From Styela clava (lineage: Eukaryota), in the NCBI RefSeq assembly GCF_964204865.1, contig NC_135257.1, positions 10,664,001 through 10,728,000 on the forward strand: DNA of 64,000 nucleotides, given 5' to 3'. Below the pieces are notes generated by a model. It searched no databases. It saw nothing but the letters and a program-made list of their open reading frames with translations, and was not told where the DNA came from. Both the position numbers and the translations under genes were made by a program. Position 1 is the stretch's first letter; each line of letters opens with the position of its first letter. Shown here piece after piece: positions 25,970-37,304 of the stretch.

Positions 25970-28675
25970 TCAGAGTTCAGCCTTGAACTCACTGAGTGCT
26001 TTCGCAGGATTGAGCTTTTTCTGAGACTGTCTGCGAACAGGAGCTGTTCTAACTTCATTCTTTGTTCTCTCATTTCGAATGAGTGGTTTCTTCTCAGGTG
26101 CCTTCATTTTCCACATGACAATCTTCAAGTCAGATTGAGTATGTTTTCTGTATTTGGTTGATGCTACATAAGAAGCCTTCACTGTCAATACCACAGCATT
26201 CATCAGATTCTTGGCTGCCTGAATAAGAGAGGTTGCGCTATCCAAACCAGACAAAACGGTTTCACCACCAGCGATATTTTGCACCTCAGCCTTGACTTTG
26301 GAACACATTTTCAACTGATGGCAACATAAAGTAATACGCTGCAGATAAGCGAGCAAATCACGTTTAGCAGACGAGTCGGGACAGACATCTGCGATGGATC
26401 TGGCAAGCTCATCCAACCTGCTTCCTGCATCAGCAATATTCGTGGCTGCGGCGATGACATCAGTCGAATTTTTCAATTGACCTTTTCCACGAGTGAAGTC
26501 AGTCATCTGCATCATAATCATGCACATTTGTTTAGCAAGTACGATAATATCATTGGATGATTCGTCCCATTTGGAAACCTCAATATCAAGAAGCTGCTTC
26601 TCTTTTACAAATTCTTGTACTTGTTCTTTGATCTTCAATTTTTCTTCTTCTGGAAGCTCTCTCATCTTGGCACGATCACTTGGATCCCCAGTATTAGTTT
26701 CGATCGTTTGTCCACTGACTCTACTTCCTCCAACCTCTGACAATCCTTCAACAACTTCACCATAATCAGAATCTTCGATATCTTCTGGATTCTTAATCAG
26801 TAGTACAGCACGTCTTATCTCACGCACTCCATCATAAACAAGACGAGAAGTGTCAATGAATTCATTCTCTTGTGGATCTTCAGGTGGATCCTTTGAAAGA
26901 TTTCCAACAGATGTTTCAAGAACTGCTTCGAATGAAGGCATCACTTGAGTTTGCAGAGTTTGACATGCTTCCAATACTCTATTGATACTGTAATCTGGTT
27001 CGTAATTATCCATTTCAGCATTGACAACTTGTACAATACGAGCACATCTACCTCTGATATCACCACCCTTTCGATCCAGAACTTCGTAGTCATTTTGCTG
27101 CAGTGCCATCACACAGCTAGTGACATCTTCCAGTATATGAGCCTCTGATACAGCCAAGAAATCTTCAATTGTAGTGATTTCATCCACAGCCTCAGTCAAG
27201 ATACCAACTTGAGTTTCCCATGCCTTCTTGAAGACATCCATGTTGTCTTGAGCTACTTTACTTCTGGGGCGTGCTGCGAGGGTTAAAGCTGCATTGATGA
27301 CTTGGGGGCACAGGCTATCAATTTGTTTCGCAGCTAGTCTAACCATCTTAACCCCTTCTTCGTTATTTGACATTGAGCAAGCAAGATTGGCAACCTCAAC
27401 AAGTTTGCCAGCATGTTCACGAAACACTTGAGCATATTCCTTGACTTGCTTTTCATCTCCATTCTTGGCAGCCTCAATCAAGACGAGCAATGGAACATTG
27501 CTTGCAAGGTATGAATCAGAAACATGATCCACCACTGCTTTACGAAGCTGTCTGCGTAAATCTTTCGTTTTCTGTACCATGTGATCAATAGCTTTTTCAA
27601 GGTTTTCAGACGGATTTTCTTTACCAGCATTGTTGATGTACTCCTGCAAAAGATCTTGCAATGCTTGACGTACAGCGTTACACTCAGCAACAATTCTTTC
27701 TCTTCTATCATCTCTAGTGCACGAAGAATCTGCCATGAGTGCAGCACCACTGATTATACTTTCTAGCCTCTCTTCCAAAGTTGGTCTATGCCTAGCTTCA
27801 TCAAAATCAAGCGGTTCCATGTCAATCTTGTCTAAAAATTCATCTAAAGCATAAGCCAGCTCTCCTGTTCCTTCTTCAGGGCGAGGATGAGATTCTCCGG
27901 TGGCCTGTACAGTATCAGAGATACGTCCCAAAGCCTCTTCAACACGGCGAAACACGTAATCACGATTGGCTTTGGCAGCCGCAACTTCAGGGTGTCTCAG
28001 ATATGCTTGAGAAGAAGTGTACAACATCATGCTATTTTTCTTAATTTCACCACGAGCGGCAGCAAGATCTTCTCGTCTTCTTTGATCTTTTAAATCATTC
28101 TGACGAAGTGCTGTTGCATGATTCAACTCAACAAGATCTCTTCCAAATTCTTTAAAGTTCCTCAACAGCTCATCCTGATCATGTGAATCCTTCACTCTAC
28201 TCATACTTTGCTGGGTGATACGAAGACGTTTAAGCAGGTTCAGAACATCAGCCATATCAGCAAGAATCAGAAGCCTAGTGACAGAAGATAGCAGAGCTCT
28301 GGCAGCTCGCACCATACTTCCTCGCTTCATAGAAGAGCATGGGTCATCAGCAAACTCATGAGAAGCTCTGGACATTGTTTCACCATCTTTGCGAGTATCG
28401 TCCACAGCTTCTTGTAATTCCTTTCGTAATTCTGTATTTTCCTTCGCAATTTCTGTTCCTTTTGCGATAAAAGTATCAGTCGCTTTTTCAACAGCACCAA
28501 CTAAAACCTTGGGACTTCTGCTCTTGCCCTTTTTCTTATTCGATGGTCCTTTTGTGTTGACCAAAGTCGTTACTTGAACGACAAGAGGTTCCAAGGTCTT
28601 CTCTACAGAAAGTGTACGGATTTCAAGATTTTTTGGATTCCATCTCTGCCCGGAGCTTGATGAAACAGAACTCAT
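25970..28675 (-). CDS. CTNNA: alpha-catenin (vinculin family), single-exon CDS, 901 aa
   Basis: Uninterrupted ORF with WNPKNLEIRTLSVEKTLEPLVVQVTTLV, RAARALLSSVTRLLILADMADV, LEERLESIISGAALMADSSCTRDDRRERIVAECNAVRQALQDLL, SKWDESSNDIIVLAKQMCMIMMQMTDFTRGKG, SLIQAAKNLMNAVVLTVKASYVAS and WKMKAPEKKPL. A splice acceptor (ctttgtgtacAG, 28728-28729) lies 52 nt upstream of the ATG. Confidence 0.98.
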   Translation of the reverse strand: MSSVSSSSGQRWNPKNLEIRTLSVEKTLEPLVVQVTTLVNTKGPSNKKKGKSRSPKVLVGAVEKATDTFIAKGTEIAKENTELRKELQEAVDDTRKDGETMSRASHEFADDPCSSMKRGSMVRAARALLSSVTRLLILADMADVLNLLKRLRITQQSMSRVKDSHDQDELLRNFKEFGRDLVELNHATALRQNDLKDQRRREDLAAARGEIKKNSMMLYTSSQAYLRHPEVAAAKANRDYVFRRVEEALGRISDTVQATGESHPRPEEGTGELAYALDEFLDKIDMEPLDFDEARHRPTLEERLESIISGAALMADSSCTRDDRRERIVAECNAVRQALQDLLQEYINNAGKENPSENLEKAIDHMVQKTKDLRRQLRKAVVDHVSDSYLASNVPLLVLIEAAKNGDEKQVKEYAQVFREHAGKLVEVANLACSMSNNEEGVKMVRLAAKQIDSLCPQVINAALTLAARPRSKVAQDNMDVFKKAWETQVGILTEAVDEITTIEDFLAVSEAHILEDVTSCVMALQQNDYEVLDRKGGDIRGRCARIVQVVNAEMDNYEPDYSINRVLEACQTLQTQVMPSFEAVLETSVGNLSKDPPEDPQENEFIDTSRLVYDGVREIRRAVLLIKNPEDIEDSDYGEVVEGLSEVGGSRVSGQTIETNTGDPSDRAKMRELPEEEKLKIKEQVQEFVKEKQLLDIEVSKWDESSNDIIVLAKQMCMIMMQMTDFTRGKGQLKNSTDVIAAATNIADAGSRLDELARSIADVCPDSSAKRDLLAYLQRITLCCHQLKMCSKVKAEVQNIAGGETVLSGLDSATSLIQAAKNLMNAVVLTVKASYVASTKYRKHTQSDLKIVMWKMKAPEKKPLIRNERTKNEVRTAPVRRQSQKKLNPAKALSEFKAEL

Positions 28676-36404: not shown

Positions 36405-37304
36405 GTAGGTAGCCTAGATTCTGTGCAGACAGACAGACCACCCTCTCTGAACTACCAGACTACGGTATGACCGTATGAAGATATGGTAAACAATCGAAAA
36501 ATCTTGTAGATTGAGCGTAACGAGTTTAATAACTTATTTGTGTGTTGATTTGGTTGTAAATTGTAATCAATTAGGTAACATTGTAGGACAGTATAATTAC
36601 TGAATTAATTCAAGTTAACATCAATGATTTATCCCAATTTAGAGAGAAATCTGGAAATTGAATTAATATCCAGAATATCTACTCCATTCTGAAACGATGT
36701 ATGATCTTCCCTAATATTAGAAATATTATTTGTAGTGAACTACAGTACATTAGTAACGCAGCATGTCTGCACGTACATATGTCTGTATGTATTTGAAATT
36801 TTATTCATTTCATTAAAAAATTTTCGCTTGGTATTTTCTGGCATCATTTGCTTGGGTATGACCATGCCAGATAGAAATAATAAAGCTGAAAACCATTATC
36901 TCACATTAGTGATATGTTTATAATGACCAGCTATACTGGGAGCTTGTGAAATAATGTAGATAAATAATATTATGTATTCGGGTAAAAATTATAAACCTAT
37001 TATGTTCGGCAGTAGAATATATATTTATTATTTTATATTAGCTTTCATTGGATCCACTCACTGGCTGTTGGGTCCATTATCCCAGTTATTGATTTGACCT
37101 ATAAACCTGATATACAGCATATTTTTAGTTTAAAATGATGCTCATTAATCATGCTTAAATAGTCCAGTCTGTGTATAACCTCATCAAATAGGATCAAACT
37201 CAGCAGAATGATATTGGCATATAAATAATATATTGTAATAATTTAAATGCATCATACTAATATTTTTGAGTCTGAAGAAGTATATTCCGTAAGTGCTTAT
37301 ATAA

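Follow-up and report, generated by a model that had tools for sequence, protein, structure and literature searches.

An old tandem duplication of the alpha-catenin 5' flank in Styela clava, with a CpG-dense promoter-like core in each copy

The 64,000-nucleotide (nt) window of the Styela clava genome analysed here (RefSeq assembly GCF_964204865.1, contig NC_135257.1, positions 10,664,001 to 10,728,000 of the forward strand; all coordinates below count from the first letter of the window) carries, directly upstream of a leftward alpha-catenin gene, a tandem duplication that our analysis confirms as real and old. Each of the two copies holds a compact CpG-dense core, and the evidence suggests, as its simplest reading, that a promoter directed towards catenin has been duplicated. 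That both copies of this promoter are still active is the best explanation we can offer, and one to which we give an even chance of being right. A preliminary description of the same sequence had gone further, proposing that a bidirectional promoter shared by catenin and an ANKRD11/12-like gene had been split between the copies through reciprocal decay, a proposal that is weighed below against the divergence between the copies and the transcripts that flank them.

Structure and age of the duplication

The assembly contains a single match to alpha-catenin, namely the coding sequence (CDS) in this window, whose product is 75-76% identical to the alpha-catenins of the ascidians Clavelina, Ciona and Phallusia, its best named relatives. 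Upstream of it, a direct-repeat search over 26000-40000 returned a ladder of repeat pairs whose start-to-start spacing climbs stepwise from 2409 to about 5330, and BLAST aligned the two copies in five blocks, all of them colinear and with a single sharp junction at 31078, which is the layout of a tandem segmental duplication:

25970-28675, minus strand: alpha-catenin CDS, one intronless open reading frame (ORF) of 901 codons
28669-31077: copy 1, 2409 bp, its first 7 nt within the catenin CDS (ATGAGTT)
31078-36411: copy 2, 5334 bp, a colinear direct repeat of copy 1, joined to it head-to-tail at 31078
31076-31084, minus strand: duplicated catenin start stump, a two-codon ORF that reads ATG AGT TAG
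28669-29097 (copy 1) and 31078-31520 (copy 2): aligned block 1
29311-29634 (copy 1) and 31523-31859 (copy 2): aligned block 2
29858-29926 (copy 1) and 33593-33671 (copy 2): aligned block 3
29951-30203 (copy 1) and 33913-34152 (copy 2): aligned block 4
30200-31075 (copy 1) and 35529-36408 (copy 2): aligned block 5

The duplicated unit of 2.41 kb thus includes the first 7 nt of the catenin CDS and extends about 500 bp past the CpG-dense core. The junction reads ...GATAGCT-A-ACTCATG..., with a microhomology of 1 nt (A), and the sequence beyond 28669 shows no relation to that beyond 36411. With copy 1 as query, a search of the whole assembly (377 Mb) found these two copies only, apart from a 73-77-nt repeat fragment that both share. 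The tandem duplication of about 2.4 kb that had been described beforehand is therefore borne out by the repeat ladder, the five blocks and the genome search, and so are the insertions of about 3.2 kb that had been placed in the catenin-facing arm of copy 2, where sequence private to this copy amounts to some 3.2-3.35 kb in three blocks (31860-33592, 33672-33912 and 34153-35528). Copy 1 has private segments of its own (29098-29310 and 29635-29857), which are without a further copy in the genome and are probably deletions in copy 2, or else sequence diverged beyond alignment. The stump at 31076-31084 arises because the breakpoint falls 7 nt inside the catenin CDS; its two codons had been taken as decay of the catenin arm of copy 2, but they follow simply from the position of the breakpoint.

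Block alignments made with MAFFT gave a substitutional identity of 85-94% between the copies, Kimura two-parameter distances of 0.06-0.16 and 23 gap events. The flanks of the core differ by 10-16% and contain indels, in agreement with the many substitutions and indels initially ascribed to them.

Ascidians can be highly heterozygous, and the duplication could be an assembly artefact in which two haplotypes of a single-copy region were set in tandem, for instance at a closed gap. Mapping of reads and contigs, which covered 30440-36439 in four runs (X5, X6, X7 and X15), lends this idea some substance. No mapped read or contig spans 31078, so that the tandem order rests on the assembly; X15, which consists of Hi-C raw reads, reaches about 0-2x where the sequence is unique, a low coverage for which restriction-site counts account in part, and X6 shows RNA of copy 1 only. 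The divergence, however, points the other way. The copies lie 10-16% apart and differ further by 3.3 kb of repeats, yet each of them is about 99.5% identical to the reads of other studies, the distance between a copy and the contigs from X5, X6 and X7 being about 0.4% (about 5 differences in about 1270 nt). Moreover, both copies are present within single runs (X7 and X15), the window contains no N, the block ends are sharp and offer no shared flank usable by an overlap assembler, and the duplicated ATG stump with its 1-nt microhomology looks like a real breakpoint. The small distance of each copy from the contigs of other studies argues strongly that the copies are paralogues and not alleles. 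The case of two haplotypes placed in tandem, which had been raised along with the preliminary description, does not agree with such figures, and we consider an artefact of this kind highly improbable.

The short fragment that both copies share with the rest of the genome (30360-30435 and 35682-35753, 73-77 nt) corresponds, with 86-88% identity, to one end of a longer repeat that is dispersed in the genome and whose other copies (loci L022-L032) are 91-99% identical among themselves. Since the two copies have four substitutions and one deletion in common within it, the fragment predates the duplication. A small RNA gene in this multi-copy piece of 73 nt (30360-30435) was considered and rejected, the piece being an end fragment of the longer repeat.

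Uneven divergence along the duplicated unit

Divergence between the copies is far from uniform, and four stretches are needed to follow its course:

30562-30680: core of copy 1, CpG-dense
35889-36007: core of copy 2, the CpG-dense counterpart of core 1
30681-30960: right arm of core 1, which pairs with 36008-36290
30163-30270: second conserved island, in the catenin-facing arm

The core differs at 4 of 119 positions (3.4%; Fisher p=0.001 against the rest), and the right arm at 18 of 280 (6.4%; Fisher p=0.002), against 12.6% (189/1504 sites) outside the core and its right neighbour. The near-identity of the cores had been recognised beforehand, although the count of about two differing positions was too low, since three are found over about 110 nt and four over the 119 nt given here. 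To the right of the core divergence climbs from 3.4% through 6.4% to 11.1%, and to its left lies the most diverged stretch (30271-30561), with 15.7% plus indels of 7, 4 and 9 nt. Beyond this stretch comes the second island, which differs at 4 of 108 positions (3.7%; binomial p=0.0015) and which in copy 2 is cut by the insertion between 34152 and 35529.

The cores stand out in composition as well. Each contains 18 CpG per 200 nt, with an observed/expected ratio of 1.5-2.1, where the 64 kb average 3.9 and have their 99th percentile at 15, and the two cores, tied with a repeat at 34551-34750, are the three CpG-densest places of the window. Both copies retain 14 of the 16 core CpGs. Core 1 includes a half-site of the cAMP response element (CRE), ACGTCA, at 30596, an E-box (CACATG) at 30623 and a CCAAT box at 30630, and the combination of CRE half-site, E-box and CCAAT within 60 nt occurs in the 64 kb at the two cores only. 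Compact, CpG-rich, equipped with CCAAT and CRE-type sites and lying between opposed genes, the core resembles a bidirectional promoter in composition and setting. Its low divergence would, in the reading favoured below, be due to purifying selection and not to gene conversion.

A hidden small gene in the conserved right arm was also considered and rejected, because 30681-30960 holds no start-codon ORF that is conserved across both copies. Rfam and tRNA scans of 28000-37500 gave nothing credible, the one microRNA match (E=0.98) being far under its threshold, and no JGI metagenome contig contained an exact match to 42 nt of the core.

RNA-like contigs on the catenin-facing side of both cores

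Two of the mapped runs (X6 and X7), which come from two studies, resemble RNA in that unique stretches are either covered or empty, while the DNA runs cover 35840-36439. Their contigs adjoin both cores on the side that faces catenin:

30225-30572, presumably minus strand: RNA-like contig adjoining core 1, 348 nt, depth 10 in X6; the same sequence at depth of about 4-5 in X7
35564-35818, presumably minus strand: copy-2-specific RNA-like contigs beside core 2, in X7 only

The first 133 letters of the X6 contig fall on 30440-30572 with one difference, and the remainder had been aligned to 35554-35742 of copy 2 at the cost of 19 mismatches and 7 gaps. These mismatches are the letters of copy 1 at every diagnostic site (e.g. 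35594, 35601, 35604 and 35608), and for this reason the whole contig is assigned to 30225-30572 in copy 1, where it comes to an end 10 nt into the conserved core. Beside core 2, X7 has one contig on 35564-35731 (1 difference, depth 5.1) and another on 35702-35818 (0 differences, depth 3.4), and X6 has no genuine copy 2 contig. On the opposite, ANKRD-facing side of both cores, over 30640-31239 and 35840-36439, the depth of X6 and X7 is zero.

Run X5 is labelled as another organism, yet it is low-depth DNA that is 99-100% identical to unique parts of the window; the sample may have been mixed or mislabelled, or come from a very close relative, and the run is not usable as an outgroup.

A proposed duplicated promoter directed towards catenin

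The reading that we favour would bring these observations together as follows. The whole 5' flank of a single, intronless alpha-catenin gene was duplicated in tandem, with a 1-nt microhomology at 31078, and the core would drive a leftward transcription unit, directed towards catenin, from a start near 30572. The conserved sequence of about 400 bp, made up of the core and the 280 bp to its right, would be the upstream regulatory region of this unit, since the RNA-like contigs sit only on the catenin-facing side of the cores, and the poorly conserved sequence to the left of the core would be its transcribed leader. A conserved proximal region next to a leader that is free to vary is the usual anatomy of a promoter, and hence the conservation of the right arm can be explained without a plus-strand exon. 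Copy 1, which adjoins catenin, would be the copy that serves it, and copy 2 would be a second, more distant promoter, from which a leftward transcript would now meet some 3.3 kb of transposable-element sequence inserted after the duplication.

The 1.9 kb that separate the core from the catenin ATG hold 48 upstream ATGs, and a transcript that starts in the core must therefore lose most of this leader. Its removal ahead of the catenin ATG might be achieved by cis-splicing, or else by trans-splicing of a spliced leader, which is known from other ascidians. A putative minus-strand splice signal, AAG|GTAAT at 30124/30123, is conserved between the copies, and a candidate acceptor-like ...TTTGTGTACAG is located at 28729-28728, ahead of the catenin ATG. 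In Ciona trans-splicing affects about half of the genes, and the 5' end of a mature mRNA is no guide to where transcription started (PMC4691747). A Ciona spliced-leader pattern gave 2 one-mismatch matches in this genome as against 3 for a control, no more than chance would give. A short upstream ORF on the minus strand (28676-28710; ATG CGA AAA AAT TTG TTA TCA ACA TGA) overlaps the catenin start out of frame; no acceptor AG was found between its ATG and the catenin start codon, and consequently any processed leader that we could find would contain it.

Several points weigh against this reading, the first being that it leaves unexplained why copy 2 stays conserved if its leftward transcript is unproductive. 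The low divergence on which it draws could stem from gene conversion and not from selection. The RNA nature of X6 and X7 is a guess, their contigs give neither strand nor true ends, and the absence of contigs on the right arms is no proof that no exon lies there. Within the mapped stretch, 30440-36439, neither a splice nor a trans-splice link to catenin came to light, most of the presumed leader lying at 28669-30439, and the bin that contains the junction (31040-31239) has zero depth in all four runs, with Hi-C at about 0-2x.

The second of these points can be carried further, to an account in which copy 2 is a decaying duplicate without function, its RNA is residual promoter noise, and the low divergence of core and right arm is the work of gene conversion between copies 5 kb apart. 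The less-diverged tract does form one contiguous block of about 400 bp, and its left edge is sharp, with a 9-nt indel and about 20% divergence immediately to the left of 30562; at least three repeat insertions are found in the catenin arm of copy 2 and none in that of copy 1, and of the two RNA-like runs one alone yields contigs of copy 2. Within the tract, on the other hand, divergence is not zero and rises gradually to the right (3.4%, 6.4%, 11.1%), and the CpGs are retained by both copies. The second island, furthermore, lies 290 bp away across a stretch diverged by 15.7%, and the insertion of 1.4 kb that splits it in copy 2 would hinder a single conversion tract. We regard a conversion-maintained relic as decidedly unlikely.

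A proposed split of the promoter between two genes

The preliminary description saw in the two copies a case of regulatory subfunctionalisation without gene duplication, in which catenin and the ANKRD11/12-like gene had originally been driven by one bidirectional promoter, whose copies, once it was duplicated, came to divide the two directions between them. In terms of present wiring, copy 1 would serve catenin and copy 2 would serve the ANKRD11/12-like gene by way of a short non-coding first exon, ending at 36063 or 36404, and an intron of about 19.5 kb. The features on which this proposal hinges are the following:

36064-36069, plus strand: candidate donor, GTGAGT in copy 2 and GTCAGT in copy 1 (30737-30742)
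36405-36410, plus strand: candidate donor, GTAGGT in copy 2, 1 nt from the end of the duplication, and ATAGCT in copy 1 (31072-31077)
55953-56032, plus strand: beginning of coding exon 1 in the ANKRD11/12-like gene, its ATG at 56030 preceded by a strong acceptor (AG at 55953-55954), about 20 kb from copy 2

The geometry is favourable, with copy 1 facing catenin and copy 2 the ANKRD11/12-like gene. In the latter the coding part begins with an exon that carries an ankyrin repeat within the same ORF as the ATG at 56030 and opens with a strong acceptor, and the gene must therefore have an upstream exon or receive a spliced leader. No plausible coding ORF was seen between 36.4 and 48.5 kb, and between 36.45 and 55.95 kb the CpG density peaks at 10 per 200 nt, at about 40.7 kb, as compared to 18 in the cores. 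The divergence of the right arm (6.4%) is about half of the neutral value (12.6%), as it would be if one copy were constrained and the other drifting, and both candidate donors are intact in copy 2 only. What had been reported letter by letter on the two pairs of hexamers and on the ATG AGT TAG stump is correct throughout. The donor role of the hexamers and the bidirectionality of the core, nonetheless, were assumptions of that description and not observations.

The transcripts, however, give this scheme no support. Neither X6 nor X7, runs of different studies, has any RNA contig depth to the plus side of the cores, and the catenin-facing side of copy 2 is still transcribed, with RNA in X7 at about the depth of copy 1. 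Nor do the differences in sequence speak for decay in one direction. At about 10% divergence, a binomial estimate puts the probability of at least two changes in 6 nt at ~0.11 and that of at least one at ~0.47; the differences between the hexamers are thus compatible with neutral drift and, being unpolarised without an outgroup, are not callable as losses. CpG loss on the right arm is symmetric between the copies (2 versus 2), and over 80 nt that could be polarised, with the consensus of the repeat family as outgroup, the catenin arm of copy 1 is not the slower one, having 7 private substitutions as compared to 4 in copy 2. Finally, the conservation of the right arm is equally well explained as sequence upstream of a leftward start.

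What stands of the split proposal is thus an old duplication of a promoter-like CpG core, the better preservation of the cores (3.4% versus 12.6%), and a copy 1 that adjoins catenin with an RNA-like contig at its edge. Reciprocal decay does not stand: both cores are conserved, the catenin side of copy 2 is represented among the RNA-like contigs, and a pattern in which each copy has lost what the other keeps was not found. The separation of the two genes needs no decay in any case, because a tandem duplication by its geometry leaves each gene beside an intact copy. We consider service of the ANKRD11/12-like gene by copy 2 unlikely, and the complete history, with an ancestral bidirectional promoter whose copies shared out its directions, somewhat more doubtful still.

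Relation to known systems

Local tandem duplication that makes a second promoter is an evolutionary event of a known kind, and bidirectional promoters and subfunctionalisation are likewise known concepts. Tandem alternative promoters and first exons that arose by local duplication are represented by the variable first exons of the clustered protocadherins and of UGT1A. As in those systems, the promoter and leader are here repeated head-to-tail upstream of one coding body, with a conserved core in each copy; unlike them, there are two copies only, the leader is non-coding and in its distal copy interrupted by repeats, and splicing from the distal copy to catenin is putative. The bidirectional promoters of vertebrate head-to-head gene pairs are short and CpG-rich, and are enriched in CCAAT/NF-Y and CRE/ATF-type sites. 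The compact CpG-dense core with its CCAAT box, CRE half-site and E-box between divergent genes resembles them, whereas the coding starts, at 1.9 kb and some 20-25 kb from the core, and the presence of RNA on the leftward side only do not; divergent starts within 1 kb are accordingly putative here.

In the duplication-degeneration-complementation scheme it is duplicated genes that subfunctionalise. Each regulatory copy could, in a similar fashion, keep one of two ancestral tasks, but here no gene has been duplicated, both copies keep the core and leftward transcription, and complementary loss is not demonstrated. The outrons of trans-spliced ascidian genes offer a further parallel, as the start of transcription may lie far upstream of the mature 5' end (PMC4691747). 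An outron would reconcile a start 1.9 kb upstream with a catenin ATG that is preceded by candidate acceptors, although 1.9 kb would be long when compared to the Ciona mean of 438 bp (PMC4691747).

If both copies are live promoters, the locus provides a clean natural example, in a chordate, of alternative or redundant promoters arising by local duplication, and one in which the copies have diverged enough to be separated in ordinary short reads. If the split between two genes were true, it would represent a simple and fairly new route from co-regulated head-to-head genes to independent regulation; in the literature that we searched, no tandem duplication is described that uncoupled the two sides of a bidirectional promoter. 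As the evidence stands, the duplication is an ordinary structural variant with an interesting, unproven regulatory reading, and makes a modest but testable case.

Repeat insertions in copy 2 and features to its right

The insertions that separate the blocks of copy 2 are 92-100% identical to their repeat families, as compared to the divergence of 10-16% between the copies, and are therefore younger than the duplication:

31860-33592: copy-2-only block 1, with 104-nt tandem repeats and an element of about 220 bp; depth of hundreds to thousands
33675-33883: a high-copy short element of about 209 bp in copy-2-only block 2; loose contig ends at 33675 and 33883
34153-35528: copy-2-only block 3, a nested composite of repeats with TATA on either side; copy 1 has TATA once

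The element of about 220 bp in block 1 (32864-33090) has inverted ends of 32 nt; the chromosomes carry many copies with 96-100% identity to it, and it resembles a miniature transposon with very recent activity. The element of about 209 bp is 94-97% identical to 40 scored copies among 1929 candidates, and a part of about 450 bp in block 3 is 92-93% identical to 40 scored copies among 9601 candidates. At the insertion site of block 3, alignment blocks 4 and 5 overlap at 30200-30203 of copy 1, and contig joints run from 34524 to 35445 and from 35240 to 35388. A very high-copy element in the same block (34527-34794, depth in the thousands) contains a tRNA-like GGTTCGAATCC motif; ARAGORN called no tRNA at 34527-34794, and the element may be a tRNA-derived short interspersed element.

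Between copy 2 and the exons of the ANKRD11/12-like gene, two adjacent long ORFs of 701 and 138 amino acids on the plus strand (48567-51163), the first of them with a DUF7869 match (E=5e-7), look like a transposon. The only moderately CpG-dense stretch in this interval, at 40550-40900, could be an alternative promoter or a repeat. The neighbouring TLE/Groucho-like, COPS2-like and ANKRD11/12-like genes are split into exons, unlike the intronless alpha-catenin gene. At 55420-55570, about 400 bp before the exon with which the ANKRD11/12-like coding sequence begins, a CCAAT-containing unit of about 57 nt is repeated in approximately three tandem copies.

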